Source of the DNA: Macrostomum lignano | Taxonomy: Eukaryota | Length of the DNA stretch: 37,644 bases | Reading direction: 5' to 3' | Assembly: GCA_002269645.1 (NCBI GenBank) | Contig: NIVC01004702.1 | Span: 1 to 37,644, forward strand | In this document: piece by piece, positions 10,301 to 28,457 of the stretch | Position numbering within the stretch: the stretch's first letter is position 1 | Layout: each line of letters opens with the position of its first letter | Made by a program: the position numbers and the translations under genes | The notes under the pieces: model-generated | What the model saw: only the letters and a program-made list of their open reading frames with translations | Databases searched by the model: none | Told to the model about the DNA's origin: nothing

Positions 10301-11033
10301 AGACCTATACTAAGACTTGTACCTAAAATATTATTCAGATTAATACTAAGACCTATGTTCACTTATGAACTATAATTTAGTATAACTTTAGTGATAGCTT
10401 TTTGGATTTTTAATAGGACAGAAGCAAGCCCTACAGTACCAATTTTTCAGGCTTATATGTACAAGTATACCAAAAGTTTTCTAGTATTTTAGCATAATTA
10501 GCAATGTGGTTCCAATATATGTCTCAGATTTTACATGTATAACTGCTAGCTAACCCAGCTAATCTAGCTAGCATAAATTTTAGCAAACAAAAGGATACTT
10601 TCAAATTTGATAGCTAAAATAAGAAAGCAAGGAATTGAAAAAAACAGATAAGAAAGGTGTAAAAGGAATTATGTAACATAACTAAGTCATATTTTATTTA
10701 TAGTTAAAGCCTATTTATATTAATGCCTTAAGATTAGCAGTGGTTAGACTGTTCCTATCTCATTCAATTCCTCAGCTAGTGCCATTGCAAGCAAGCCTTT
10801 TGCTGTCTTTCTTAGTTTTAGCACTTTTTTAATCTAACAGCAATATCAATTAAGATAATACATTAACTTATGTAATATATTTCCCTATGTAATGTCATGC
10901 ATAAAATTTAGGTAATGTAATCTCATATACTGCTAAAGGTTTTTAGGTACCCGAATTCTTCTATTTGATGCTATTTTGTACCTGATTTATAAGAGATTTA
11001 AAAATATCAATTTTCAATCAAACCTTAATCTAG

Positions 11034-13985
11034 TGATCACCCAGGAGCTGGTCAAATATGAAGATGCCGAATACGAAGTGGAAAGCATTGAAGATCACGA
11101 TTGGGACGAAGTTGACCAAACTATGCGCTATTTAATCAAATGGCGCGGCTGGCCAATAGAATGCGCTACGTGGGAGCCGGAGCCTGACTTAACGAACTGT
11201 CAGGAGCTGCTGAAAGAATACAAGAACTTCATCAGTGGCAAGAGTAGAAAGCGCAGACCTACGGCAGCTGAGGTGGCCGAATCATCCGAGAGAAGTAAGG
11301 CTAGGGTTCTTCAACTGTTGGACTGCATCAACTTTGATGACCTGACGCCGGAACGCTTTGAACAGGTGATTTTGGGCTGCGCTTTGGTGCGAAGCAAGTC
11401 CCTGGTTTGATTCATGGACTACTCAACTGGAAGAACGGGAAAGTGCGTTTTTTAGAAAATGTTTGTGAGGCAATGTATCATGTGAGGCATTGTTGACTGT
11501 GTAACCCTGTAACAATGTGTGTAACAGATATGATAAAATAGATTTATAAAACCAAATATTCGAGCACTTTGTACTTGTACAGGGGCCACTGTTTGTGGTG
11601 TAAATTAGACCTTAATCAACCACAGGTACTAAAATAACTAGATGGGCCACCCAGGCATATATACTTGGTAAAACAGCTTTCTACTTTCAGTTCAGTAGCA
11701 AAGAAGAATACATAAGCTATTTTTATAAGAGTAAAGGCAGCTGAAATGACTTTGATAAGTTTAGAAGCCCAAGCTTGCAGGCGTAAACAACTTGCTAATT
11801 GGTTCAGCAATAATGTACATTTGCCAGTCCACTGAAATGTACATGGCCGCTTTAGGCTGGAATTCCGAGAAAGGCAATAAAAATTGGGGCGGGGCGGGGG
11901 TAGTGTGGAAATGCGCGGTTGAAGGTTGAATCTGGGGGGGGGGGTAAGAGCCAATAAATGAGCCTTGGCTTTAAAAGTACATTAAAATGCTTCTCTTTAA
12001 CTTACTACTGAAGTGAAAGTAGCTTACACGCAAATGTGCTGAGTTCATCTAGTTATTCTATTATCTGTGTAACCAACTGACAGTAATGTGTTATTTATAG
12101 TTACTAACCAGTATTGAATAACAAGGCAAACTGTCTGTCTAATCAACAGGTTCTAGCGGAGACCCTGACCAAACGAGCTTTACAAAGCGTTGCTAAGCGA
12201 CGAATCCTGCCCAGTCAGAGTCGCATGATCGCCGGATCTAAGCGTAGTCTAGGTATTAAAATTCAAGCCGAACTCAAAAACTGGGAGCTGTTATTAAACG
12301 CTAACGAGCCTCGGGCTAAAATTGTTATTGAAAATAAAGTCGATCTCGAAGGACCACCTTTGGCGTTTACCTACGTTACTAAACGGGTGCCGGGACCTGG
12401 CGTGTCGATTCCTGACGATCCGGTACTTGGCTGCACCTGCACGGACTGCTACGAGGAGCGGCACTCGTGCGTAGCCAGTCACGTGCACAACGAAGGTCGC
12501 GTACCGTATACTAGGTGAGCTTCTATTATATTGATTTTTTGACAACTTATTTTGTTGTCACGATAATTAGAGACAGTTTTTTTCTACTGTTTTTAAGTAG
12601 TTTGTGCAGTGTCATTTAAATTTAACGTGAAAGCTAAAAATTTCCTTTTCTTGGGGTTTGCGACCTCATGAGTATATGGGGTTGAAAATGAACAACAAGC
12701 ATTTAACTCGACTGATGTCTAGCTCAGCCTATGAGAGAGCAGTAAGGAGAGAGGTTAAAGTCTGACGGATAAAACTCAGCCTAGGGGCAGACCCAATCTG
12801 TCTCAGCCTATGAGAGAGCAGTAAGGAGAGGTTAAAGTCTGACAGATAAAACTCAGCCTATGGGCAGGCCCAATCTAGCTCAGCCAATGAGAGAGCAGTA
12901 AAGACAGAGGTTGAAGTCTGACGGATAAAACTCAGCCTTAGGGGCAGGCCCAATCTAGCTCAGCCAATGAGAGAGCAGTAAGGAGAGAGGTTAAAGTCTG
13001 ACGGATAAAATTCAGCCTAGGGGCAGGCCCAATCTGTCTCAGCCAATGAGAGAGCAGTAAGGAGAGAGGTCAAAGTCAGACAAGAGGAAAGCCAAATTGT
13101 TTATCGGTCTGGCTGAGGGCTGGGGCGCCACCCCTTTTCTCTTGCTCGCTATGCACGCAAACTGTACATGCTCACCATGCTTGTAGGAAGGCGGCTGGCT
13201 ATTGGTGCAGCTCCAAAACTTAAAATATTCGTATTTTGAGAAAAATTTGCTTAAAATAAGAATGGCCATAGACAACTACCATTGTTTTTTTTACAAATTG
13301 CAGACAGGGCCGGCTGCCGAACGTGCACGCCAGTTTTCCCATACACGAATGCAATTCGTTGTGCAAATGCGGCCCAGATTGTCCGTTTCGAGTTGTACAG
13401 CGCGGCCGTCAGTTTGGTTTGGCCATCTATCGGACCAAGAATCGCGGCTGGGGTGTTCGCACTCTGCAGCGCATTCCGCGCGGCTCCTTCGTTGTCGAAT
13501 ATGTCGGCGAGGTGGTCACCTTTGAGGAGGCCGAACGTCGAGGTCTTGAGTACGATCGCCAGGCACAGACCTATTTATTTGACCTGGATCTAGACGGCGA
13601 GCCGGTGTATTCTGTAGACGCTCGGGACTATGGCAATATAGCCCACTTTCTGAATCATTCCTGCAGTCCAAATCTGACTATTCGTTGCGTCTACACTCAG
13701 TGCATCGATAAAGACTTGCCACTATTGGCTCTATTCGCTGCAGAGCCAATACCAAAAGGCGCCGAATTGACATTTGATTATCAAATGTCCGGCGCTATCA
13801 GTGCTGAACAGCAGCAGCAGCAGCAACAACAGCTTGGCGCTGATGATGCGTCAGAAAGCGCCGCCGAGAATGCCAGTGTGGTGAGCAGCAGTGTCGGCGG
13901 TGCCAGCAGCGTCAATGGTGGCGGCTTAGCGCGCATGCGATGCCTGTGCGGTTCAGCCAACTGCCGGCGATTCCTGTTTGATTGA
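11034..13985 (+). CDS. SUV39H: SUV39H/Su(var)3-9-type histone H3K9 methyltransferase; exons 11034-11365, 12150-12514, 13304-13985; first exon not located
   Basis: Chromodomain YEVESIEDH...YLIKWRGWPIECATWEPE; ENKVDLEGPP; pre-SET GCTCTDC...ECNSLCKCGPDC; SET RGWGVRT...EYVGEV...FLNHSCSPNL...ELTFDY; post-SET CLCGSANCRRFL. Intron phases match (0 then 2). Confidence 0.95.
12720..13080. repeat. About 79-bp tandem repeat, 4.5 copies, in a SUV39H intron
   Basis: CTCAGCC(T/A)ATGAGAGAGCAGTAA units start at 12723, 12802, 12879, 12959 and 13038. Confidence 0.95.
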
Positions 13986-15189
13986 CTTGATGAATTGTTA
14001 ATAATTTACCAGCTTTAACAGTTAAGCGTGTTATAGTAGCTTAAGCCTACTTTTATATTCATTCATACCCATTGAGAATGTTACCGAGACTCCTGTGACT
14101 GTTTAACTGTTGTTAGAATCGTAAACGAGTCTCGAAACAAGTAGTCCAAAAGTCGTTGTGTTAGTGCTTAACTTTCTACTAACTCAAGTAGGCTAAATAG
14201 AGTTGTTATAAATACGAAATGCGATTCTCATTAATAAATTGACGCAGTTGCGCTTTAGACGTAACTCGGTGACTCTACAGATACTCTGGGCAAGCCTCAG
14301 GTACGACTTTACGCCTGAAATTGACTCTAAGGTGACTCTGACCACTTTTTGGTGACATCTCGTCTTATTAGAGTCGTCTAGAGTCACTTCTTTCTATTTT
14401 ACCTGTGTAAGTAGCAACGACTCTTGGGCGACGGTGTAGGAAGTCAGCTTTTTAAAATCTAATTTGCCTACAAATTCAACTAAAATTATCAATGCAACAG
14501 CTGTCGACAGCATTAATACTTAGTATTGCCTATATAGTAGTTTAAAGTAGTATTATACTATTGATGCAAAATTTTAACAACTATTTTCACCTATTTGCAG
14601 GGTTTAAGTTGCAATTGAAGTTGACAATTTTACTATTGTTTCACCGCTCACAATGCATTGCTTTACTGATGCTACTACTAGTAGTATATTTTGTGCAACC
14701 TAACACATTCTATTATACGAATATCTATAATATTTGCGAGTATGTATTGTGCAAAAGGGCTCTTTTTCTACTATAGTTTTTATTGCTTCTTTAGTGCTTT
14801 TTCATCAATTAAAATTTCTCTACCAGTATGTACATTTTTAACACACATTTTTACGCTGTTATTTCTTGCTTACTTTCTGCGTTCATGATAAAAATAAAAT
14901 ATGTTAATGCTTCTTATAACGGCAAAGCATTTTTATTTTATTGTAAATTAATGCGGGGTCAAATATTTCTATTTTTTGTCCTTGTGTAACTTGAATGTTA
15001 AATCTTTTCAATGCAATTTTTGCTTGCTGTATTAGTAATTGTTTAGCTAAATAAAACTAGTCCAATAGTGACAAATGTGTCATTGATGTGTTAGTAAATT
15101 CTGTTATTTAGTATTGCTAAAATTTGGTATAGTGACAGGTTTTCTACAGGTAAATGGAAGATAATTAATTAGCTGTGGGTTCTTATTAG

Positions 15190-15977
15190 GGTCAAGTGGC
15201 TTCTGCGAAGGTCAAGCGGTTCTAGGAAAGGTTAGATGGTTTTTTGGAAATGTCAGGTAACTTCTTGAAGGCTCAGGTGGCTTCTGGAAGATCAAGTGGC
15301 TTCTGGAAAGGTCAAGTGGCTTCTGGGAAGGTCAGGTGGCTTCTGGGAAGGTCAGGTGACTTCTGTGAAAGTCAGGTGACTTCTGGGAAGGTCAGGTGAC
15401 TTCTGTGAAAGTCAGGTGACTTCTGGGAAGGTCAGGTGGCTTCTGGGAAGGTCGAGTGGCTTCTGGGAAGGTCAGGTGGCTTCTGGGAAGGTCGAGTGGC
15501 TTCTGGGAAGGTCAAGTGGCTTCTGGAAAGGTCAAGCGGTTCTAGGAAAGGTTAGATGGTTTTTTGGAAATGTCAGGTAACTTCTTGAAGGCTCAGGTGG
15601 CTTCTGGAAGATCAAATGGCTTCTGGAAAGGTCAAGTGGCTTCTGGGAAGGTCGAGTGGCTTCTGGGAAGGTCAGGTGACTTCTGTGAAAGTCAGGTGAC
15701 TTCTGGGAAGGTCAGGTGGCTTCTGGGAAGGTCAGGTGACTTCTGGGAAGGTCAGGTGGCTTCTGGGAAGGTCGAGTGGCTTCTGGGAAGGTCAGGTGAC
15801 TTCTGTGAAAGTCATGTGACTTCTGTGAAAGTCAGGTGGCTTCTGGGAAGGTCAGGTGACTTCTGTGAAAGTCAGGTGACTTCTGGGAAGGTCAGGTGGC
15901 TTCTGGGAAGGTCGAGTGGCTTCTGAGAAGGTCAGGTGGCTTCTGGGAAGGTCGAGTGGCTTCTGGGAAGGTCAGGT
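15190..15977. repeat. G-rich 20-bp minisatellite TTCTGGGAAGGTCAGGTGGC
   Basis: About 39 copies. The variant block TCTAGGAAAGGTTAGATGG recurs at 15221 and 15541 (period 320 bp). Confidence 0.95.
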
Positions 15978-16083
15978 ATAGATAATTTAGAGGGTGTTTA
16001 ATTTTTTAAGATCGGATGATTGAGAAGTGGAAAGTTCAAGTGAATCTTCGAAATTGAGAAACTCATCCACTGTAAACCACCCC

Positions 16084-17283
16084 ATGCTGTCGCTAGCTAA
16101 CGCAGTGCTGCGCGGCTGGCAGTCGCCGGTGCGCCTGCTCGCGCATCGACAATGGTTGGCCATGTCGCATCGGAAACAGATGAAACTAGAATACGAGATT
16201 AACCTGGACTTTTCCTGGGTGCCAATCGACGAGAATGGCAGGCGGAAGCCTCTGATCTATTTGACAGATGCCAGCAAAACGCCGGAAGATGTGCTAAATA
16301 ATCTAGACAATTTTGATAAGCAGCGAATGCGCGAAATTGGCGAACAGATTGACATCCAGGCTGCTCTTGGCAAGTCTAGGGTGCCGGATAAGAGCAAGCT
16401 TACTAGCTTCGATTGGGTGCAGTTGTTGTCCTGCAATTCCACCGGTACATTGGGCAAGAAACTCTTTTACTTGGCCACAAAGCAGAACTCTGAGGCTAGC
16501 GCATTGGAGAAGAAAGCGATTAAAAAGAGAAGCACAGTGAAGCAGGAGTTGGCTCCAAGCTATGACTATATCCATCCTAGGATTGAAAAAACTGAAATTA
16601 AAGCATTCTACGATATGCGATTGATTCAGGAATACAAGTTCTGTCCATCTCTTGTATTCGACATGTCATTCCACGAGGAAATGAAGTTAAAGTTCCTAAT
16701 GGACTTCGCCAATCAATTAAGAGAAATCTTTCACACGAATCGCGAATCTGTAGAACCGTTTCAATTGCACTTTTGCAATCTGGCTAGGGATACTCAGCAA
16801 TACTACGTGCTTAATCGGGCGCTTAAAAGCTACGATTATGGCATTGGCGAGTTCTCTTCGCACGAAAGCTTTGAAGATAGTTGGCCATACGAATTCACTG
16901 ACGCTTGTTATACGTCGCTGTTTCCAGCCAAGGATCTGATCTACATGTCGCCGGATGCTAAATACGAAATGAGAGATTACGATCCTACTAAAGTGTACAT
17001 TATTGGCGGCCTAGTTGATCTGGGCGGCGGCTGCGTTGGCGCTACCAAGTCGAAGGCGACCCGTCAGGGCATTCGAAGTTTACGCCTGCCGCGCAGCATC
17101 GCGTCCAGGTCGTTGCCACTGAACATCTTCTACAACATTATACGGGATATTCGTCTAACCGGCTCCTGGGTAGAAGCTAGGAGGCACGTACCGAGACGGA
17201 TATCTGAGCAGCGAATTATTCAATCGCCTACTGCTCAGCAGTCACTGTTGCACGGGTATCAGCCACGGTCTGGAGGCTTCTAG
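16084..17283 (+). CDS. TRMT10C: Mitochondrial tRNA m1R9 methyltransferase / RNase P protein 1 (TRMT10C/MRPP1), single coding exon
   Basis: ATG at 16084 with an Arg-rich, acid-poor presequence. Trm10 domain: LVFDMSF...ANQL...NRESVEPFQLHFCNL...LIYMSPDA...VYIIGGLVD...LRLP...WVEARRHVPRR. ATTAAA at 17336. Confidence 0.88.
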   Translation: MLSLANAVLRGWQSPVRLLAHRQWLAMSHRKQMKLEYEINLDFSWVPIDENGRRKPLIYLTDASKTPEDVLNNLDNFDKQRMREIGEQIDIQAALGKSRVPDKSKLTSFDWVQLLSCNSTGTLGKKLFYLATKQNSEASALEKKAIKKRSTVKQELAPSYDYIHPRIEKTEIKAFYDMRLIQEYKFCPSLVFDMSFHEEMKLKFLMDFANQLREIFHTNRESVEPFQLHFCNLARDTQQYYVLNRALKSYDYGIGEFSSHESFEDSWPYEFTDACYTSLFPAKDLIYMSPDAKYEMRDYDPTKVYIIGGLVDLGGGCVGATKSKATRQGIRSLRLPRSIASRSLPLNIFYNIIRDIRLTGSWVEARRHVPRRISEQRIIQSPTAQQSLLHGYQPRSGGF

Positions 17284-17445
17284 TAATGACTGAGACCAAT
17301 GAAAACAGTTGTAAAGAATGAGACGCTTCGTCTCTATTAAAGATTTTTAAAGGCCTACATTTTGAGTTGAGCTCACTTGTGGTTGGTTACAATTGACAAT
17401 TAAGTCAAGATTTGCAATCAAATCAAGTAAGAGGAGAGAAACAAA

Positions 17446-17795
17446 AAAGGGCCTGTCAACTTATGCTCATGGGGTGGAGCCCGAGTAACCTATGTACACA
17501 AATGATGCGTCATTCTGCTCACAGTGACATCAGAAAGCTGGATTTGGCAAGAAAAAGCTACAAATATTGGACCTGGGATAGGAGAGAACAGGCAAGGGGA
17601 CAATTAAGGATTATTATGTAAACTTAAGCTTATGAAACTTATGAATCCCTAATTGTCCCATTGCTTGTTATCTCCTATCCCAGGTAGCTTTTTGCCAAAT
17701 CCAGCTTCCTGATGTCACTGTGAGCAGAATGACATGTCATTTGTGTACATGGTTACTCGGGCTCCACTTTATGAACATAAGTTGACAGGCCCTTT
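17446..17795. repeat. Long inverted repeat (arms about 150-165 bp, spacer about 30 bp); probable MITE
   Basis: AAAGGGCCTGTCAACTTATG... at 17446 and ...CATAAGTTGACAGGCCCTTT ending at 17795. Arms 17446-17612 and 17644-17795. No clear TSD. Confidence 0.85.
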
Positions 17796-18480
17796 CATAA
17801 ATTACCGTTTTTGAAAATGCGGCTTTCGAATTCATTTAGGAAACGATTTGTACATTTGTTATACTCCTTGCTAATAACGTTTTTGTTCGAAATTGGCCAA
17901 TAGCGATGTGACATGAAAAGTTAAATCAAGCTGTCGAAAATTCTCGCATTTATTGATTTCTGCTGTCAGTTGTCACGGCCTGGTAGAAGAGCAAGCTATA
18001 TAGCATCGTCTATTTTGAGTCAATTTGATCGTAGGTGGCTTCATGGTAGTACTGCTTTTTCAACTTAAACTATTATTTTCGTTACTATCGGCGGCATTTC
18101 GAGTTTTGCATCTTCTTGTTGTATTTGTTACACTAAGTGAAGCTTAAGCGAGTTGAAATGCTTGTTATGTTTCTGAATTAATCATGTAACAATTTTTCCA
18201 TCTCATTGCAATACGTACTCTATGCATGCCGTTATATAACTGGTATTTTAACAGCTTTAAATAAACAAACCAATTTTATGTAGCTTTTTGTGAAAGTTTA
18301 AGAGTTACCCTTTGATTACAGATTTATCGCATTGAATTTTGCTTAAAAGAGAATCCAGAGATTCGAAAAAGCTCTGGAAATTATTTTAACCAAGCAGGGA
18401 TCGATGTCAGCAGTGTCTCCATGCCGTGTCTCTACTAATAATATCGCCTGTCGTAATTTCAGCCATTTGTTGATAACGAC

Positions 18481-19533
18481 ATGCTTCAAGCATTCAGACG
18501 AGCATTATTGTGCGCATCCAACTGTTTCGGTGGACACATCAACAAGCGATGGTATCCTAGACGGGGTACCTGGGTATTGAATCCGCCGCAGCCTTACCAG
18601 CTGCAGATGGACTTCTCTACTCCTTTGGCCATTATTAACTTCGACGATGGCTATCGAGCTGTACAGAATCTATTCGACAATCTGACTGACCTGCAAAAGT
18701 CACGGCTAGATTGTCTTCGAGTGCAGTTAGAGTTACTCAAGCCGTACGCATCGGAAAGTTTTTGTTTACCAGACTGTGATAAAATCTTTGACAAACAATG
18801 GCTGGAGTTGTTGGCTTGCAAAAATTCTAGGTCGTTAGATCGTCAGCTGTTTAAAATCTATCGACTTCAGATTGCGCACTCGAAGGATCCGCTGGCGAAT
18901 GTAGAAACAGAGCACGGCGCCGTACCGCTTTGGTGCATCAGGGACTGCTCAGCATTCTATAATTATAGACTTCAGTCTGAGCTGCAGTTCTGCGACAGAT
19001 TGATTATTGATTTGGCTTTCGATTCGATTATGTCGCCTAAAAGTCTCGCCTCGTTTGTGCACGAATTTCGTCACGCTATTCGTTTCAATCGGGAGAGTCG
19101 CCAGCCGTTTCGACTGCACTTGTGCGGTCCTCGATTGGCCGGCTCAGCCCAGTCAAAGTCTTTGTTTCGTATGCTTTTTCCCGGCGGTTTCAAGAGCAGA
19201 GAAGACTGGGAGAAAGGAATGCTAGCCGTTATGAACGAGCAATCGTTGTACGACATGTCGGATGGCTGTTTTTCTACTTTGTTAACCAATATTGACGACG
19301 TTGTCTACATTGTCCCGGGCTCGCGGAATCGTCTGAATGCTTACGATCCTCAGAAGACTTACGTCTTACCTGGATACGCCTATCGTCTGACGGAGATGCA
19401 GTCTGCGGCTGTGCAGCGAGCCAAGTCACTTGGTCTGAAATGCTACTCACTGCCCTGGAATGTTGATCCGCGCTTGTTCAAATTCATGCAAGCGATGCTT
19501 GCGTTCAAGAATAGACGATTCTTTGTTGAGTAG
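18481..19533 (+). CDS. Divergent TRMT10C/MRPP1 paralogue, probable pseudo-methyltransferase, single coding exon
   Basis: Colinear with 16084-17283 (WLELLACKN vs WVQLLSCNS; FYNYRL...LIIDLAF vs FYDMRL...LVFDMSF; NRESRQPFRLHLC vs NRESVEPFQLHFC). Presequence-like N-terminus, intact 350-aa ORF, AATAAA at 19617. Confidence 0.82.
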   Translation: MLQAFRRALLCASNCFGGHINKRWYPRRGTWVLNPPQPYQLQMDFSTPLAIINFDDGYRAVQNLFDNLTDLQKSRLDCLRVQLELLKPYASESFCLPDCDKIFDKQWLELLACKNSRSLDRQLFKIYRLQIAHSKDPLANVETEHGAVPLWCIRDCSAFYNYRLQSELQFCDRLIIDLAFDSIMSPKSLASFVHEFRHAIRFNRESRQPFRLHLCGPRLAGSAQSKSLFRMLFPGGFKSREDWEKGMLAVMNEQSLYDMSDGCFSTLLTNIDDVVYIVPGSRNRLNAYDPQKTYVLPGYAYRLTEMQSAAVQRAKSLGLKCYSLPWNVDPRLFKFMQAMLAFKNRRFFVE

Positions 19534-20218
19534 CTAAAAAGAAAGAGCTGTTAACTTTGTCGTTATCATCGATTGGTGTTTTGTATCGTTGAAAATTTTA
19601 GAGCAAAAAAACTTTCAATAAAATATACAGGCATTTGACCACCAGCGGTTTACCGTCCTTTCGGATTTCAGCATTGGTCTTTTTGTAAAGTTGCGTAAAT
19701 CGTCAAAATTACACTTTTTTCGTTTTTTCTTTCTTTACTGCATTGAGAGATAACCGTCTTTAGGAGCATATGTTAAGTTTTCTAGTTAAGCACAATCGGA
19801 AAAGCCTTTATTCAAAATTTAGAATTTTTATATTGCCTTTAAATGCGACTGCACTGCAATGAAGTTGTTTGGTATCTGCTGACTCTTAAACTTCTTAATC
19901 TCAACTAGTCTAAACTAAGCCAGGCAACTCTTCTTCGATAGCTGTTCTGTTTTCTTTTTTCAGAGCCGACATTTATAATTTCCCTTTAGGCTTGAAGTGG
20001 TTGGCTGTGACATGATAGAATGTAGAGTTTCTCCTATAAGATTCCGCTGCCACTGATAAAGGCTCTGAGCTGCTGCCTGTATTTGCTTCACTGTTTTAAA
20101 ACAGCGGATTCAAAAGCTCGACTATCTTAGCAAGATAGCAACTCTGTCCAAGCTAGACTGTTAAACTAACGCAGCAATTTTGTACCATTGCTAAATTGGG
20201 TTCATTGAATCAACTGTC

Positions 20219-23200
20219 ATGGCTTATAGTCGAGCAGTGTTAGCCCTGACACTGCTACTGGCAGCAGTTCCTCTTGCTCTGACTGCACCTGGACCTGCCG
20301 CTCGACCCAACAACAACAACAACGACCGATTGTTAAGTCGAGTCCGACGAATAATCGGCAATGCGGACGAGGTCAATGAAGAAGAGAAGCAGAGACTGTT
20401 TCCATTCTCTGTGACCATTACCGGCTCCTACTATGTTAGGGTGCCAAAAAAGATTGGCTTCATCACTTTGAATGTTCCTGTTAAGAGGCAAGTGCACTGC
20501 GGTGCCAGCATACTGGATAGGAATCATGTTATCACGGCGGCGCATTGCCTGCTGGATGAAGATGGGGACCTGTGAGTGCATTAGCGCCCGTGTAAATGTT
20601 TTATTGGTTTTGGACCAGGGTTAGGCAATCTTTTTTACTTTAAGGGCCAGACAGAGAATCTACTAAATAACTGCGGACCGAAGGAGGGGTGAGAGAGTGG
20701 AGATGGGATGAGATAATGAAAAAGAGAGGAAAGTAGAAGAGAGAGAGTTGAGAAGAGTGGAAAGGAGAGGAGAGAATATAGGAAAGGGAAAAATGGAGAT
20801 GGGATGAGAGAAGGGAGATGAAATGAGAGAATTGATAGAAGAGGAGAGAGTGGAGAAGAGAGGAAAATGGATAGGAAAGGGGAGAATGAAGAGGAGATAA
20901 TAGAATGGAGAGAAGAGAGGAAAGGAGAGGAGGGTAGAATAGAGAAGAGAGGAGAGAAAAGAGAAGAGATTTTTCGAGAGAAGAGAGCTGAAAAGAGTCA
21001 AACCTTGAGCGGGCCGGATTGCTATTGTGAAGTTTCAAACGACCCGATGGCCAGAGAGAGGCTTCACGGGCCAGAGTTAGCCCACACCTTGTTTAGACTA
21101 TATGCTGTAGATACTCACTTATATTACTCACGCCTTTCAGAATCGCTTCAACTAGTTGGAAAGTGTACATGCATAGTATTAAACGTAAGCCATCGATGTA
21201 CGAACGCATGAAGAGCTGGTTTGCTCGCAAAGCGTCCAAGTGAGTACGCGTTATTAAGCTTTGTAGGTCTTTGTAGCTTCTCAGCGATTGATCGATGCTT
21301 CTCGTGCAAAAAGTGTGTACAGTTAATAAAAAATAGCATTTCGATGCCCACTTGATCTAAACACCCAGGTTAACGGGAAAGAACATAGCGGAAAATGTGG
21401 CCCATCACGCTCATTTTAAGAAGATTCACATTCATCCAAGCTACGATAAAGGTGAGGTACTACTTCACTATACTTTCTCAGGTTCTTACTGACTTTTGAA
21501 TCGGATATCGTCATTAAAACTCCAATGGCCTGGTTATCAGCCCATCAATTAGCTCGTAATATACGCCCAACAAACAAAAATGCTACTCCCCAGGCAGCAT
21601 CCTACACGATGTAGCCGTCATTGAGACGTCCGATATTCGTTACGACCAAATCAGCCATGCCGGGCCCATTGGTCTGCCGCCGAGCGAGGTAGTGCGGGCC
21701 GACGGTCCAACCCCTGGCACGCTGTGTGACTACTCTGGCTGGGGCTGCACTCGTCCGAAGGGCAGCGTTCGAGAGAAACTACTGATGGCGCAGTTCACTG
21801 TTAAACCGTTGGGCGATTGCACCAGCGTCTTTCAGGGAGGAGATTCGGCGTTTTGGCAAAAGAATTTGTGCGTTCAGGCCAATAGGACGACAGTGTGTCC
21901 GGTGAGAAGAAGCTATAGCAATATGGAAGCGACTCCTTGTGGACTTATTTATTTGTGGACTCCTTGTGGAGTATTTAAAAACCATAGGATGTAGCAAACA
22001 ACAGAAGGGTATAGCTTTGACTTACTTGACTTAGCTGCAGGGCTGTCCCGGAGGGGACACAGCGGGAAGGCGCGGGCGCCCATTCCGCTAGTCCCTGAAC
22101 GGCCGACGCGTCGCTATGGACGGAGGGTTGGCGCCGCCCAGGGAGGTCCCCCAGTGTCGCCAGCAGCTATAGTGCTCTCTGGAAAGGAGAGTTCAGCCCT
22201 GCGGGTGGCCCGAAGGTAGCGCATGAGCTGATTAAAGTTTTCGGGTTTGCACGCTTCAGTAATAGATGTGTGTGGCCCGAGGTAAGTGAGTCTGGCCCGC
22301 GTGAAGGCGGGACAGATGCTGACGAAATGCTCAGCGGTTTCGTCACCTGAGTTGCAGAAACTACAGGTGGCGTTGGTGGCGTTGCCCTGCAGGTACTGGT
22401 GCCTGGAGAAGCAGCCGTGACCAGAGAGGGTCATGGTGGCAGCCCGGATGTCTCTGCGCGAGAGGCGCAAGAGGAGCTTCCGGAGCTGGTGAGAGGGCTG
22501 AGGGACAGCGCCTCTGGATTGCCTGCAGGTAGTGCAGTTCGCCCAAGTCGAGCGGTGCTGGGTCCTGATCCACGCTTTGATGCGCGAGTCGATGACACAG
22601 CCAGGAATCGAAGGGTATAGCACACAACAGCAGAGTATAGCAAACAACAGCAGAGTATAGCAAACAACAGAAGGGTATAGCACACAACAGCAGAGTATAG
22701 CAAACAACAGCAGAGTATAGCAAACAACAGAAGGGTATAGCACACAACAGCAGAGTATAGCAAACAACAGAAGGGTATAGCAAACAACAGAAGGGCATAG
22801 CAAACAACAGAAGGGTATAGCAAACAACAGAAGGGTATAGCAAACAACAGAAGTGTATAGCAAACAACAGAAGGACATAGCAAACAACAGAAGGGTATAA
22901 CAAACAACAGAAGGGTATAACAAACAACAGAAGGGTATAACAAACAACAGAAGTGTATAGCAAACAACAGAAGTGTATAGCAAACAACAGAAGGGCATAA
23001 CAAACAACAGAAGGGTATAGCAAACAACAGAAGTGTATAGTAAACAACAGAAGGGCATAGCAAAGAACAGAAGGGTATAACAAACAACAGAAGGGTATAA
23101 CAAACAACAGAAGGGTATAACAAACAACAGAAGGGTAAAGCAAACAAAAGAAGGGTATAGCAAACAACAGAAGGGCATAGCAAACAACAGAAGGGTATAG

Positions 23201-24051
23201 CAAACAACAGAAGTGTATAGCAAACAACAGAAGGGCATAGCAAACAACAGAAGGGCATAGCAAACAACAGAAGGGTATAACAAACAACAGAAGGGTATAA
23301 CAAACAACAGAAGTGTATAGCAAACAACAGAAGTGTATAGCAAACAACAGAAGGGCATAGCAAACAACAGAAGGGTATAGCAAACAACAGAAGTGTATAG
23401 TAAACAACAGAAGGGCATAGCAAAGAACAGAAGGGTATAACAAACAACAGAAGGGTATAACAAACAACAGAAGGGTATAGCAAAGAACAGAAGGGTAAAG
23501 CAAACAACAGAAGTGTATAGCAAACAACAGAAGGGCATAGCAAACAACAGTAGGGTATAGCAAACAAAGAAGATAGCAAACAACAGGTATAGCAAACAAC
23601 AGAAGGGTATAGCAAACAACAGAAGGGCATAGCAAACAACAGAAGTGTATAGCAAACAACAGAAGGGCATAGCAAACAACAGAAGGGTATAACAAAGAAC
23701 AGATGGGTATAACAAAATAGCAAAGATGTAGGATGTAGAAGCGTGTAGAATATCACAGAAGAGTGAAAAAAGCTAACAACAAACCTATTCTAGAAGACTA
23801 AGACATTATTAAATTGTGTGCAGAATCGGTCTTTCAACACTAAAATGTTTATTTTCTCAAATCAATTGTCTTTTCAGGGAGACAGCGGCGGCGGTCTCAG
23901 GTGTGAGCACAACGGTCAACCCTATCTGGCTGGCATAGCTTCCTCCGCGGCCACTGGAGCTAATCCGGAGCTTTATCCGGCTAATTTCATGCGGATTACC
24001 GGCTACATTAGCTGGATTAGGGAGACTATGGCGCTTAGTAGCGCCAGCTAA
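20219..24051 (+). CDS. Secreted S1 (chymotrypsin-fold) serine protease, 338 aa; exons 20219-20571, 21141-21239, 21369-21451, 21594-21901, 23878-24051
   Basis: Signal peptide, RVRR|IIGN activation site, and catalytic triad TAAHC / HDVAV / GDSGG. All four introns are GT-AG with matching phases (2,2,1,0); exon total is 1017 nt. Confidence 0.92.
20616..21090. mobile_element. Second copy of the hAT-type GA-filler MITE, in protease intron 1
   Basis: Left CAGGGTTAGGCAATCTTTTTTAC..AAGGGCCAGA. Shares AAACCTTGAGC..GGATTG..ATTGTGAAGTTTCAAA with 2846-3281 and ends CACCTT. Degenerate TSD TTTTGGAC / GTTTAGAC (6/8). Confidence 0.8.
21995..23728. repeat. 20-bp minisatellite GCAAACAACAGAAGGGTATA in protease intron 4, interrupted by the LINE fragment
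   Basis: One unit at 21995-22014 and about 55 units at 22610-23728. A variant block repeats at 23041 and 23401 (period 360 bp). Confidence 0.95.
22015..22609 (-). mobile_element. 5'-truncated non-LTR retrotransposon (I/LOA-group-like ORF2 C-terminus plus 3' UTR)
   Basis: Minus frame reads LSRRDIRAATMTLSGHG...CSFCNSGDETAEHFVSICPAF (C-x2-C-x8-H-x4-C knuckle), stop at 22114, then a GC-rich UTR and a TAAGTCAAGTAAGTCAAAG tail. GAAGGGTATAG flanks it at 22004-22014 and 22610-22620. Confidence 0.85.
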
Positions 24052-25944
24052 CTCATCCTCGGGCCGATATTCTATTTATTATTGTCTAATTGTTGACTCA
24101 AAAACACTAAACAATACGAGAATGAGGCTTCAATGTTATTTACGTGTTGCTTTTGTTGATCAAATAAATAATGAGAAAACTACATTTTATTCATACTTAT
24201 TAACCATAAAGTATGTTGGCGATGTTGAAAGACAACATCTGTAAATTTTATATTATCAAAAGAATGCGACTTTTTAAATTTAATTATGACTCATAACTAT
24301 GACTCAGTTTTTTAGATACGCTGAACGAGTTTTATAAAGTTTTTTATGATTTGAATAGTTAGGATGTGGTCGCTCAATAAATTAGCAACAGTTCAGAATA
24401 TGAGCGTAAACTTATTTAATTATATGGGCGTAGCAACTATTATGGAAAGTAAACTACGCAGTTCGAAGCTTTATCTGTTCTCAAACAAGCGAGAATATCT
24501 GCCAGATTACTCTGAGTCTAATTGATAGGCGGCTAGTTGTTTATTTTACGTTGATATTCTGTGGCCGACTTGAGTTATATTAACAAAGTTATTATGCGTA
24601 TATATTTAATGTTGATTGATAACAATATTTGTTTGTTTACATGTGCCGTTTCTTGTTAATGTGTACGTTACGTGCGTGCTAGAATGATTAGTTATTCTAA
24701 AAAAATTTCTTTACTCACTTCGCTTCCTTCACGTTAATGAAAGAAGATAAAGTAAGAATTTTTGTTGTAGTTCATACTTTATGAAGATAGATTAGTTTGT
24801 GAAAATTAGCAAACGAAATGTGTCGGTATTACAGTTTGGAAGCCTATTTACTCGTAATTCAATTTGCAAGCGTTTCACACCCATTATACCTGTGTAGATG
24901 ACACACTGTATAGTTAGTTAAACTTCTCACAAAAGGATCTCTTCTCACTCATTCAACAACTCAAGCAAACCCATTTGCTGCTCATTAAAAGCGTAGACCA
25001 AGTTTTTTCAAATCTAAATTTAGCTCTAGCTATACATAAATGAAATAGCTAAAACCAGTCTATAAACTATGGCACCCGTTCATAGGCGTTGCCACGCCTG
25101 ACACTTTCTCTCCACTGTATTAATTAGTAGTGCTAGCAGTGTCATCCCATTGAACCTGTGCAACCTCCATACACGCCATGGCTATAGATTAGATTAAAAG
25201 AATACCCAGGCATATGTAATGCAACGAGTAAGTAGTGGACAAAACGACAGCAAAACTCTCAGGTAGGTGCATAGGAAAGGTAAAGAGAATACCCCCGCCT
25301 CTCTATAAACCCTTGTGACCCCCCTCATTCTCTCCCACGCTCTGACTGACAACTTTATAGGAGCGTAGAGTCTGTCAAAGCGCGGTGTTGAGGTAGTCAG
25401 TTTGCTAGGCAATGGGGCATTGTTCAAGTGCTCAAACTGAGCAGACACTGCTCGGCATATGCTCTTCTTATTCTTCATCTGCGGGTGAGAAAGTTTCCTG
25501 CGACTGTGTTTTCCAATTTTTATCGGATTCTCACATGTCTAATTTGTTTTCTATTCTTTGCAGAGCAATAGTTCTGTCCTGTGTCCCTATCCGACTTGTG
25601 CAGCCAATGACGAGATGAATATCAACTAATACTGTATACATAGCGAAGCCATCATTGGTTGCCATATTTTCCATATATAGGTGCCCATTTTTGGTTATTT
25701 TTCAACCTAGTACTCGTACAACGTAGTCAATTGATTGTCTCTCAGTGCTGTCAACTAACTACTATCTTCAGATCTGTGGCTGTGTAAGTACCTTTCTGCC
25801 CATGCCTGAAATGTTTTCGTCCTGGGGATTATTATGAATGTTTTTTTACTCAAACCTTTTAACCTTTTAACCGTTTTACTCAAAGAGCCCAGAGGCTTGA
25901 AACCGGTAGCCTACTTTCAATAAAATAATTTAACACGCCGTGAC

Positions 25945-25946
25945 CT

Positions 25947-25982
<36 letters not shown>

Positions 25983-25991
25983 ATATATATA
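25945..25991. repeat. (CT)n(AT)n microsatellite
   Basis: CTCTCT... run followed directly by a TATATA run. Confidence 0.9.
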
Positions 25992-26030
25992 GTTTAGGTA
26001 TAGAAATCCATCAAATTTTGACAGTTAATG

Positions 26031-26800
26031 TAGCTTTTTGCAGCCCATTTGGGCTCACGCGCATTGAATTTAATCCAAGATCCGTTTGCCACGAGCTTAA
26101 TGTAACGGAGCTAATTTTGTCTATGGTAGCAAGGCTGGCACAGCGGCATTTAATTTGGTCCAACAAGCATCAATTTGGTCCATAGCTTTATTTGCATCTG
26201 CTGCGGAAGAGGAGCAAGATCAGCTCCAAAATTGTGGACCATATGCTAGGCTGTCGAACCATTGGCTTGTGATCGAAGCACTCGACAGAGGTGAACACTC
26301 AAAGGACATTGCAAGGCTGTTGAATGTAAAAGAAAATATGATTTACAGCATCCATCAGCGCGTTGAAACCACTGCCAGCAGAGAGTCTGCGAAAGGCTGG
26401 CAATCGCCAAGGCAAGTTGCTCGAGAGCCTCAGGTCCAGCTGCTACTCGATGCAGTTGAGAAACCCTCTGTTAACGGTGCAGAAAATGCAGCAGAAGTTG
26501 AAGGAACAGTTCCAGTTGGTTATCAGATTTCGACTTTGAGCAGAGCTCTGGAAAAGCGACTGAAGATTGTTGGTAGAGACGCTGACATTCCAGCAGTACG
26601 CAACAACCTGCAGACAGTTGCGAAAAGGCAAGCATTTTCCGAATGGCTCACGAGCGTTTGGACCAAATTGATGCTTGTTGGACCAAATTAAATGCCGCTG
26701 TGCCAGCCTTGCTACCATAGACAAAAGCTCCGTTACACTGGTAAACTTATCTTGGATTAAATTCAATGCGCGTAAGCCCAAATAGGGCTGCAAAAAGCTA
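26031..26800 (+). mobile_element. Deleted IS630/Tc1/mariner-like DNA transposon; only the HTH region of the transposase remains
   Basis: Inverted arms about 26031-26182 and 26659-26800 (TAGCTTTTTGCAGCCC...). Internal frame VIEALDRGEHSKDIARLLNVKENMIYSI...STLSRAL...RN...KRQAFSEWL resembles a paired-HTH N-terminus, apparently frameshifted, with no DDE domain. Outer termini are unclear. Confidence 0.65.
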
Positions 26801-26967
26801 TGATTCAGCCATCATTAATTTTAGCTACCTGAGAAAATCTTATATGGGGGAATTAAAAATCAACTCCTGTCCTGATTTATCAAATAAATATGCAAATTTA
26901 TACAATCTCGCATTTCTACAGCGAAGCAATTTGCAACTTTTGCCACGATCTTGTGCTCCATCAAAGG

Positions 26968-28457
26968 ATGCTGTTAACTCTGACACTTCTGCTAGCGAGT
27001 GGCTTATTAATGCTGGAGCCAGTCTCACCGATGGGAATCTATGCCGACTCTAAGTACGACCCAACTAAGCCAGCAGTTGACCAGCCTCCGACAACTACAC
27101 TAGCTGGCAACCATCGGGGCATTCATCATGAGCCGGTGGTGGCGAAGTTTCTGCCTGACAGCATCTCGCAGAGCGGTTGGTAGACTTTTTAGCATTCAAT
27201 TAATTGTGTGCTTTTGATGTTTGTTGTTGATTGAATAATTCAATCTGCCACTCAGCTGGAAAACACAATGTGGTTTATCACAAATCTTTTCTCTACTTGA
27301 TTGATGCAATTTTGCAATTATGCAGCTCGTAATTTGAGCACACCTAAAATATGGTTTTAAAATTTTATTGCAGATAAGCTTCGCGCTTTCCTGGAATGTC
27401 GTCGGGAATGCATAGCCAAATGCGACCGCCTGGTGTACATCTACACGGATAAGAAGGTAATGATGGTGCGAGACCCAATGCGTACTTAAATTTATAACTA
27501 GTCTAAGATGTTCCTGATATGCAATATTTACCAAACTTCACTCTTCGATTGGATATTTTAGGAGTACTGTCACGATTGCATCCGGCAGTGCATGCTGTCG
27601 TTTCTGCAGCAAGCAAAAAGCCTTGGTGTAAGCATTTGTAGCTCAATTGTGCTCGTTTCTCATAGCGGGGACATTAGTAACGGTCTCGGAAATAACGAGA
27701 TTATAACGCCAGCCCCTCAGCTTCCCAGCCTCCCAGATCCTCAGCTGCTAGGCCAGCCTCTCAGATTCTCAGTTGCTGGGCCAGCCTCCCAGATTCTCAG
27801 TTGCTATGCCAGCCTCCCAGATCCTCAGTTGCTGGGCCAGCCTCCCAGATCCTCAGTTGCTGAGCCAGCCTCCCAGAGTGGCAGTTGCTGGGCCAGCCTC
27901 CCAGATCCTCAGTTGCAGGGCCAGCCTCCCAGATCCTCAGTTGCTGGGCCAGCCTCCCAGATCCTCAGTTGCTGCGTCAGCGTCACCACCTGACCTCCCA
28001 GATCCTCAGTTGCTGGGCCAGCCTCCCAGATCCTCAGTTGCTGGGCCAGCCTCCCTGATCCTCAGTTGCTGGGCCAGCCTCCCTGATCCACAGTTGCTGG
28101 GCCAGCCTCCCAGATCCTTAGTTGCTGGGCCAGCCTCCCAGAACCTCAGTTGCTGCGTCAGCGTCACCACCTGACCTCCTAGATCCTAAGCTCATACCAG
28201 TAGCCGCTCGCCAACTCACTCAAATCTGCACCACTTCAATCCAATTCCAGATCGAATTCAGCTCACAACCAGCCAGCAAAGATCAAATGCAAGGCGACGC
28301 TCCGGTTGTCGACAATGACGACGAGAAAAGGAAAGGCCGTCGTCGAGGTGGTGGCCGTAAGAGACGGCGCAACAAGCGAAAGCAGCGTCGCGAACGACGC
28401 CGGAAGGAGAAGCAGCAACGACAGGCTCTGCTGAAGAACTGCATCGTGCACAAATAA
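26968..28457 (+). CDS. Orphan secreted protein, 187 aa, with a 6-Cys motif and polybasic C-terminus; exons 26968-27175, 27374-27456, 27562-27627, 28251-28457
   Basis: Signal peptide MLLTLTLLLASGLLMLEPVSP. Three GT-AG introns with matching phases (1,0,0); exon total 564 nt ending in TAA. This gene is not recovered whole by the ORF track. Confidence 0.78.
27716..28190. repeat. 28-bp minisatellite GGCCAGCCTCCCAGATCCTCAGTTGCTG in intron 3 of the orphan secreted gene
   Basis: About 15 copies. A GCGTCAGCGTCACCACCTGACCT variant block occurs twice (near 27974 and 28155). Confidence 0.95.

Follow-up and report, generated by a model that had tools for sequence, protein, structure and literature searches.

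A tandem TRMT10C/MRPP1 pair in the flatworm Macrostomum lignano and its probably non-catalytic second copy

We analysed the whole of contig NIVC01004702.1 from the Macrostomum lignano assembly GCA_002269645.1 (37,644 bp, referred to as the window in this text), which carries two adjacent genes of the TRMT10C/MRPP1 type. TRMT10C is a textbook moonlighting protein that methylates position 9 of mitochondrial tRNAs (mt-tRNAs) and is also built into mitochondrial RNase P and RNase Z as a structural component. The first gene of the pair, copy 1, is an ordinary though divergent TRMT10C orthologue. The second, copy 2, is probably a lineage-specific, non-catalytic TRMT10C paralogue, as judged from one species and a redundant polyploid assembly. 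A first-pass annotation of the window had described a tandem TRMT10C/MRPP1 pair with one canonical member, and homology and motif mapping bear this out. It had also placed both open reading frames (ORFs) correctly; each is a single exon on the + strand:

16084-17283, + strand: copy 1, TRMT10C/MRPP1-like, intronless, 399 aa from the first ATG (Pfam, PDB match, motifs)
18481-19533, + strand: copy 2, divergent TRMT10C paralogue and candidate pseudo-methyltransferase, intronless, 350 aa

The order of features on the + strand is septin gene, SUV39-type SET gene, 20-bp tandem array, copy 1, a spacer with a foldback, copy 2 and a trypsin-like gene. The order SET gene, copy 1, copy 2 and trypsin-like gene is kept in the sister loci of the assembly.

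The ORF of copy 1 opens at a GTG (16027), upstream of the first ATG at 16084. Its product is well above the cut-off of the Pfam family PF01746 (E=8.8e-13; 48.8 bits, cut-off 27.3) and matches the human TRMT10C chains in the PDB with E=3.9e-18, well ahead of TRMT10A and Trm10. It is 99% identical to the M. lignano protein PAA81198.1 at NCBI, and its AlphaFold2 model has a mean predicted local distance difference test score (pLDDT) of 82. Human residue numbers were assigned through a 35-sequence alignment that includes human TRMT10C. According to this alignment, copy 1 retains Q211 (human Q226) and D312 (human D314), with a glycine in the G310 column and a threonine in the S322 column. Motifs I-IV of the S-adenosylmethionine (SAM) pocket are present as well. 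All motifs that the first-pass annotation had read in copy 1 could be verified, namely NQL (with Q211), IYMSPDA, YIIGGLVD (with D312) and the C-terminal WVEARRHVPRR.

Homology and catalytic site of copy 2

Copy 2 reaches 11.9 bits against PF01746, under the cut-off of 27.3. A phmmer search nevertheless places it with human TRMT10C chains of the PDB (E=1.2e-6), by a margin of some five orders of magnitude over TRMT10A/Trm10, and it carries a precomputed match to PF27710. The AlphaFold2 model has a mean pLDDT of 79.8, with values above 90 across most of the SPOUT core. Foldseek aligned this model with full-length human TRMT10C from the cryo-electron microscopy (cryo-EM) structures of mitochondrial RNase P and RNase Z over 281-300 columns (E about 1e-14). 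With the isolated methyltransferase domain (5nfj, 8cbo), the template modelling (TM) score was 0.72 at a root-mean-square deviation of about 3.5-3.9 Å. Since the sequence matches favour TRMT10C and the model aligns with the full-length protein, copy 2 is, by sequence and predicted fold, a TRMT10C-type protein, including the N-terminal domain.

The closest relative of copy 2 is its neighbour. The two copies are 24% identical over 319 columns (E=2e-28), and when 1.84 billion representative proteins were searched exhaustively with phmmer, the best non-self hit of copy 2 was copy 1 (81.5 bits, E=6.6e-18), followed by the next protein at 50.6 bits. Indexed homologue searches with copy 1, copy 2 and a 34-sequence profile returned almost nothing outside M. 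lignano and no named flatworm orthologues. Both copies share rare derived states (G202>C, where 88% of the relatives have G; R129>L, where 82% have R; A198>E; S277>C). They also share an insertion ahead of motif I and a deletion following motif III. Together with the tandem position, these similarities indicate that copy 2 arose by tandem duplication in the lineage leading to Macrostomum. Copy 2 has evolved about twice as fast as copy 1. In a Tajima relative rate test with human as outgroup, 48 unique changes fell to copy 2 and 21 to copy 1 (p=0.0012), and the median counts over 33 outgroups were 40 and 25. The terminal branch of copy 2 in a neighbour-joining tree is the fastest of all (1.37; copy 1 has 0.67, and the median of the family is 0.58).

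Three stretches of copy 2 hold the residues that matter for catalysis and SAM binding:

19063-19065, + strand: codon of E195, in the column of human Q226 (Q in 91% of the relatives)
19303-19323, + strand: residues 275-281, VYIVPGS, equivalent to SAM-pocket motif I (human 288-294, IYLTADS)
19360-19413, + strand: residues 294-311, YVLPGYAYRLTEMQSAAV, equivalent to motif II (human 307-323), with P297 at G310, Y301 at D314 and A310 at S322

At the two catalytic columns, copy 2 thus carries the non-conservative exchanges Q226>E (E195) and D314>Y (Y301). In the human MRPP1-MRPP2 complex, either D314N or Q226A alone abolishes the formation of both 1-methyladenosine and 1-methylguanosine at position 9 (m1A9 and m1G9; PMC6102140). 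Copy 2 therefore lacks both residues whose substitution kills methylation by the human protein. The SAM pocket is altered, too. Copy 2 has S322>A, and S322 binds the methionine moiety of SAM in the human protein. It also has G310>P (P297), and the backbone amide of human G310 binds the SAM ribose. Unlike copy 1, copy 2 has a deletion that takes away the beginning of motif IV and with it the columns of K349 and L351, two residues that hold the SAM adenine by their backbones in human. The LP of motif III is retained. Both flatworm copies lack about 6-9 residues of the human loop between motifs III and IV.

The C-terminal W-EA-VP-RK helix is missing as well. In the AlphaFold2 model, copy 2 stops right after the motif IV helix (H332-343), whereas copy 1 adds three further helices (H362-368, H371-380 and H382-389). 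The motif changes noted in the first-pass annotation were all found again: HEF (E195), VYIVPGS, YVLPGYAY (Y301), a short linker poor in lysine and the absence of the W-EA-VP-R segment.

Of the 67 columns that are at least 60% conserved in the family, copy 2 retains 26 and copy 1 retains 47; for the conserved columns within the SAM motifs, the numbers are 6 and 13 of 17. The most rigid positions have fared better. Copy 2 keeps 10 of the 13 columns with at least 90% conservation (P109, D208, M215, N234, P240, F241, Y289, Y307, A326 and P337), and its non-conservative losses among these near-invariant columns are Q226 and G310. Because the defining catalytic features fail, copy 2 should not be filed as a methyltransferase for m1A or m1G at position 9 (m1R9). 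We infer from its residues that it is methylation-dead.

Signs of transcription and maintenance of copy 2

The following signals and neighbouring features surround the pair:

18457-18462, + strand: TTTCAG 3' splice acceptor, directly before the annotated coding sequence (CDS) start of copy 2 (18463); fits the spliced leader (SL) acceptor motif
19617-19622, + strand: AATAAA about 85 nt beyond the stop codon of copy 2, a candidate poly(A) signal (consensus match only)
17336-17341, + strand: ATTAAA about 50 nt beyond the stop codon of copy 1, a candidate poly(A) signal (consensus match only)
16095-16099, + strand: AG dinucleotide (16095-16096), read from the sequence, just before the annotated CDS start of copy 1 and downstream of the ATG at 16084
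17446-17795: near-perfect foldback of about 350 bp in the spacer between the copies, with nested inverted repeats I1-I3 (86-92% complementary)
1106-2227, + strand: septin gene
about 10976-13985, + strand: SUV39-type histone methyltransferase gene (chromo, Pre-SET and SET exons), directly upstream of the TRMT10C pair on the same strand
20219-20575 (from 20219), + strand: trypsin-like serine protease gene with a signal-peptide-like start, downstream of copy 2
15190-15977: tandem array lying between the SET gene and copy 1, with 39 copies of GGTCAGGTGGCTTCTGGGAA at a 20-bp period
22610-23716: tandem array with a 20-bp period, 56 copies of GAAGGGTATAGCAAACAACA

The foldback is probably an insertion of the miniature inverted-repeat transposable element (MITE) type. 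Both 20-bp arrays yield long spurious ORFs (for example 22114-23715, 533 aa).

For M. lignano, an SL acceptor motif [T/C]TNCAG, an SL of 35 nt that ends in ATG and a spacer threshold of 1 kb for operons have been reported (PMC8629364). The annotated CDS of copy 2 is 5'-partial and begins PFVDND-M, with the SL ATG in frame (MPFVDNDMLQ...). The spacer from the stop codon of copy 1 to the acceptor of copy 2 measures about 1.18 kb, or about 0.83 kb without the 350-bp foldback. At a sister locus (L001), the transcript-derived NCBI models are BOX15_Mlig016274g9 for copy 2 and g10 for copy 1, both 5'-partial. In this annotation, a common prefix denotes one cluster of transcriptional units at 95% identity, which was cut at mapped trans-splice and poly(A) sites (PMC5730564). 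As the prefix Mlig016274 is common to two genes without nucleotide similarity, one transcriptional unit presumably spans both. With the same strand, a consensus acceptor, a repeat-adjusted spacer below 1 kb and a shared unit prefix, the pair has the attributes of an operon, and both copies are apparently transcribed as one unit that is resolved by SL trans-splicing. The transcript-based annotation also suggests that copy 2 is expressed.

The annotated CDS of copy 1 is 5'-partial, too; its first codon is AAC at 16099 and the protein begins NAVLRG. The AG at 16095-16096 is possibly the 5' end of the transcript or a weak trans-splice acceptor. Translation from the first ATG (16084) would give the presequence-like N-terminus MLSLANAVLRGW. 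Trans-splicing at 16095-16096 would put the SL ATG out of frame and open an upstream ORF of 29 codons (window 16084-16183), whose TGA stop (16181-16183) overlaps the in-frame ATG of copy 1 M33 (16180-16182) as ATGA.

At the base composition of copy 2, the probability of finding no stop over 350 codons is 2.3e-8. A frame of this length that is collinear with copy 1 at 24% identity must have been a selected coding gene for most of its history. The first-pass annotation had gone further and took the intact ORF as a sign of selection for a non-catalytic role. Such a role is plausible in principle, because the human D314N variant does not methylate but still supports cleavage by RNase P (PRORP) (PMC3526285). 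Signs of purifying selection were indeed found, at a weak-to-moderate level.

These signs come from the alleles of the locus. The Mlig_3_7 assembly has four versions of it on four contigs: the window, L003/L008, L007 and L001. The identity of L003/L008 and L007 to the window is 99.3-99.9%, with homopolymer indels of 1 bp as the main difference. L003/L008 matches the window fully except for such 1-bp deletions, and L007 departs from it by one homopolymer insertion and one polymorphic codon. L001 (NIVC01000544.1) is a diverged allele or homeologue with about 95-99% identity and the same gene order. The fourfold representation reflects redundancy of the assembly and/or the hidden polyploidy of M. 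lignano, which is described together with extensive duplication (PMC10468722).

The comparison with the sister loci covered positions 11652-27000 of the window, and the selection test used L001, the sole truly diverged allele; with just one such allele, the test is necessarily small. When the window is compared with L001, copy 1 differs by 5 synonymous and 2 nonsynonymous substitutions (ratio of nonsynonymous to synonymous rates, dN/dS, 0.11). Copy 2 has 7 and 6, respectively (dN/dS 0.24), which departs from neutrality with P=0.013 (Nei-Gojobori) or P=0.04 (simulation with the transition fraction of the flanks). Indels are absent from both CDSs in this comparison; the non-coding flanks show 6 such events over 1,874 bp. 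For copy 2, 3.4 indels would be expected and none was observed (P=0.034). Purifying selection on copy 2 is thus weak to moderate. With a fold that is predicted to be retained, catalytic residues that are lost, weak-to-moderate selection and indirect signs of expression, copy 2 may be a retained pseudoenzyme.

Docking helix, tRNA contacts and proposed role

In the human cryo-EM structure, the basic face of connector helix α3 grips the tRNA, R181 reads U33 and Y135 stacks on A47 (PMC8437803). The adapter helix (residues 183-202) inserts into a hydrophobic groove of the tetramer of SDR5C1, also called HSD17B10 (PMC8437803), which can take a second TRMT10C on the opposite face (PMC8437803, Extended Data legend). 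The two sets of elements had very different fates in copy 2. Copy 1 displays all three tRNA-contact features, that is a basic connector helix, the adapter-loop arginine and Y135. In copy 2 the connector helix comprises 19 residues with a net charge of +1, compared with 35 residues and +6 in copy 1 and a charge of +8 in human. The adapter loop (human 175-182) has 8 residues including R in copy 1; in copy 2 it is reduced to 2 residues, with R181>L. The Y135 column holds Y in copy 1 and K in copy 2. The human methyltransferase domain has 14 listed basic surface residues; copy 1 carries a basic residue at 6 of these positions and copy 2 at 3.

The adapter helix has been kept:

18934-18993, + strand: adapter-helix equivalent, copy 2 residues 152-171 (CIRDCSAFYNYRLQSELQFC), corresponding to human 183-202 (AlphaFold2 helix H150-168, with high pLDDT)

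It is the best conserved region between the copies (8 of 20 residues identical, followed by the β1-α1-β2 core with 17 of 48, compared with about 24% overall), and the column pattern FYN-RL---F is present in copy 2. The model of copy 2 also retains the N-terminal two-helix bundle (H58-66 and H70-89) that contacts PRORP in human. The protein is basic (isoelectric point 9.1, net charge +11). Its N-terminus from the ATG at 18481 is predicted to be helical and has no acidic residue within 43 aa and 6 K/R within the first 40, which would fit a mitochondrial location. On sequence and model evidence, copy 2 is most likely a non-catalytic paralogue that binds SDR5C1.

As a whole, we give about an even chance to the proposal that copy 2 is a maintained, non-methylating, SDR5C1-binding paralogue that acts as partner or competitor of copy 1 on the tetramer. 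A tandem duplication of TRMT10C/MRPP1 in the Macrostomum lineage would have given rise to copy 2, which would be co-transcribed with copy 1 in a unit resolved by SL trans-splicing. Its losses would comprise both catalytic residues (Gln and Asp), the final helix at the C-terminus, some of the SAM pocket and a large share of the connector helix and adapter loop. Copy 2 would have kept the SPOUT core fold, the N-terminal two-helix bundle, the presequence-like N-terminus, the basic charge and, above all, the adapter helix. Copy 2 could then dock on one of the two TRMT10C faces of the mitochondrial SDR5C1 tetramer, where it would partner or compete with copy 1 and modulate or specialise mt-tRNA methylation and the RNase P/Z platform. 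This role would differ from that of a stand-alone scaffold presenting tRNAs. The wider idea of a heteromeric mt-tRNA maturation platform, with copy 2 beside copy 1 on the SDR5C1 tetramer and the structural role of MRPP1 open to selection by itself and repeatedly split from methylation, is doubtful and is offered tentatively.

A number of observations speak against our proposal. The AlphaFold2 model of copy 2 was built on an alignment of active homologues and may overstate the retention of the fold, and SDR5C1 binding is carried over from human structures with an identity of about 20%. An orthologue of copy 2 in other species was not found in either of the protein collections searched. The neighbour-joining tree (the first-pass annotation had suggested a tree and a profile search of both copies) pairs the copies at only 210 of 500 bootstraps (42%), so their sisterhood rests on the bit scores, the shared derived residues and indels, and the tandem position. 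The losses in copy 2 are not enriched in the SAM motifs (6 of 17 columns retained, compared with 20 of 50 elsewhere; Fisher p=0.78). We therefore rejected the idea of losses targeted at the SAM pocket: the divergence is general, with the catalytic positions among those lost. Transcription of copy 2 is deduced from consensus signals and from the names given in the annotation. The two alleles compared in the selection test differ by no more than 13 substitutions in copy 2, and the allelic divergence of the CDS (1.2%) is close to that of intergenic DNA (1.4%). Finally, 1-bp frameshifts occur in copy 2 in two of the four assembled loci (two in L003, one in L007) and in copy 1 in none.

Several of these points favour a different explanation, in which copy 2 is a redundant duplicate turning into a pseudogene. 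It would have been functional for most of the time, hence the open frame, and would now drift near neutrality in a genome that became polyploid recently and has spare copies in plenty. Its branch, the fastest in the tree, the general spread of losses over conserved columns and the hidden polyploidy with much duplication (PMC10468722) would all agree with it. However, the dN/dS of 0.24 (P 0.01-0.04) and the absence of indels between the two cleanest alleles (P=0.034) speak against it, as do the conservation of 10 of the 13 near-invariant fold positions, the retained consensus trans-splice acceptor and poly(A) signal and the presence of the gene in a transcript-based annotation. Every frameshift lies in a run of GGG, CCC or TTT, and their frequency is that of gaps in these contigs generally (4 gaps per 4.4 kb; 32 gap openings per 14.4 kb), which fits consensus errors of long-read sequencing. 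They disturb the gene calls, which give copy 2 a length of 253 aa in L003 and miss it in L007. We rejected them as a main sign of pseudogenisation and keep them as a caveat. A decaying duplicate is unlikely, though slightly less so than the other alternatives.

Next in rank, and unlikely as well, is the dedicated scaffold that the first-pass annotation had put forward, in which copy 2 presents tRNAs to PRORP and ELAC2 in parallel with copy 1 and perhaps serves small or aberrant mt-tRNAs that would suit a shorter connector helix. It could draw on the RNase P cleavage supported by human D314N, on the service of TRMT10C-SDR5C1 to RNase Z and the CCA-adding enzyme (PDB 8cbl, 8cbm, 9ey0), and on the two-helix bundle and basic isoelectric point of copy 2. 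But the elements that touch the tRNA in human are precisely the most degraded ones in copy 2. With a connector helix about 16 residues shorter and nearly without charge, an eroded adapter loop including R181, Y135 replaced by K and few basic surface positions, the scaffold is a poor fit; the part that has been preserved is the SDR5C1 adapter helix. The atypical mt-tRNAs that had been invoked found no direct support. In the M. lignano mitogenome, 21 tRNAs were annotated and trnL1 was not detected, so that at least one tRNA may be aberrant; the main text of that study does not mention armless tRNAs (PMC5446695). The observation behind the first-pass annotation was confirmed. Of its interpretation, the tandem duplication, the loss of catalytic residues and the signs of selection were supported; the tRNA-presenting scaffold and the atypical mt-tRNAs were not.

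We consider it improbable that copy 2 is an active methyltransferase with a remodelled site, for example one specific for m1A or for another substrate. SPOUT proteins bind SAM largely through the backbone and m1A formation needs less help from a general base; in human TRMT10C, the contacts to the adenine and ribose of SAM are mostly made by the main chain (PMC6102140). The G310>P exchange had been a candidate for a lost SAM contact and was downgraded, because two relatives that retain Q and D (P0012 and P0035) have the proline as well. The core fold is predicted at high confidence, and copy 2 keeps the V-Y of motif I (human 288-289), P292 and the LP of motif III. Against this stand D314>Y and Q226>E in the same protein, when each single human substitution abolished both activities (PMC6102140), as well as the deleted start of motif IV (K349 and L351 columns), the missing C-terminal helix and the Pfam score below cut-off. 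Least probable of all is a recruitment outside mt-tRNA processing, as a module for protein-protein contacts or RNA binding at another cellular site: the extreme divergence, the loss of catalytic and tRNA-specific elements and the less presequence-like start MPFVDND from the in-frame SL ATG would allow it, but the SDR5C1 adapter helix, the TRMT10C-specific N-terminal architecture, the presequence-like N-terminus from the genomic ATG and the apparent co-transcription with copy 1 point to a related role.

Related proteins and known systems

We surveyed 53 other TRMT10C-like representatives that had been retrieved with copy 2 as query, a set biased by that query. Twelve of them deviate at the Q226 or D314 column (P0007, P0008, P0015, P0022, P0031, P0033, P0038, P0040, P0048, P0050, P0052 and P0053). 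For example, P0008 has D>Y, P0031 reads IPAYAA (similar to LPGYAY in copy 2), and P0053 combines Q>L with D>N. Catalytic-site loss may therefore recur in metazoan TRMT10C. P0050, with D>N, is KAG4073457.1 from Bradysia odoriphaga; a search for a parallel tandem pair found no TRM10 neighbour within 10 kb of this gene. Severely truncated mt-tRNAs are known from gall midges, which were studied alongside the Sciaridae, the family of P0050 (PMC2817422). P0022 (L005 6704-7927, on a contig of ENA ERZ25070167) is an isolated intronless eukaryotic gene with G310>P, D314>S and a degenerate C-terminus. It adjoins remnants of a reverse transcriptase/endonuclease of the long interspersed nuclear element (LINE) type and may be a retrocopy.

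In the literature searched, we found no description of a natural TRMT10C pseudoenzyme or paralogue, and nothing directly relevant on peculiarities of M. lignano mt-tRNAs. The phylogenetic distribution of multi-subunit mitochondrial RNase P has not been studied in detail, according to a 2024 review (PMC10941002). The two roles of TRMT10C can be separated in mutants in vitro; a natural protein with one role dropped is not described in the searched literature. If our proposal is true, a retained methylation-dead paralogue would be a natural separation-of-function allele, and it could reveal which surfaces of TRMT10C serve SDR5C1 docking and which serve tRNA handling. If copy 2 is merely a decaying duplicate, the finding is an ordinary one. 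A natural separation-of-function case in a tractable flatworm is plausible. M. lignano is amenable to RNA interference. It is amenable to transgenesis as well (PMC5730564).

The closest known system is human TRMT10C (MRPP1; PDB 7onu, 8cbk, 5nfj), a mitochondrial RNase P subunit that forms the m1R9 methylation complex with SDR5C1/HSD17B10. Both flatworm copies resemble it in having an N-terminal helical domain, a connector helix, an adapter helix and a Trm10-type SPOUT domain, and copy 1 also shares Q226, D314, G310 and motifs I-IV. Copy 2 differs from it by Q226>E, D314>Y, G310>P, S322>A and Y135>K, by the lack of the R181 loop and the C-terminal helix, and by a connector helix of about half the length that is nearly uncharged. 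The engineered human variants D314N and Q226A are methylation-dead and assemble with SDR5C1, and copy 2 naturally lacks both residues (PMC3526285, PMC6102140). However, these mutants keep all tRNA-binding elements and copy 2 does not, so that their equivalence cannot be assumed.

Two further systems offer partial parallels. The mitochondrial EF-Tu1 and EF-Tu2 of nematodes also stem from a lineage-specific duplication of a nuclear-encoded factor that handles mt-tRNAs (PMC1636415). Both of these copies are active and specialised for armless tRNAs, whereas copy 2 has lost tRNA-contact and catalytic elements and no corresponding tRNA oddity is on record. In trypanosomatids, the prozyme of S-adenosylmethionine decarboxylase (AdoMetDC) and the paralogue of deoxyhypusine synthase (DHS) are dead duplicates that are retained in the oligomer of the active copy (PMC5201418, PMC3663545). 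The resemblance to copy 2 is an analogy only, since fold and pathway are different; in those cases, the dead copy is a partner of the active enzyme.

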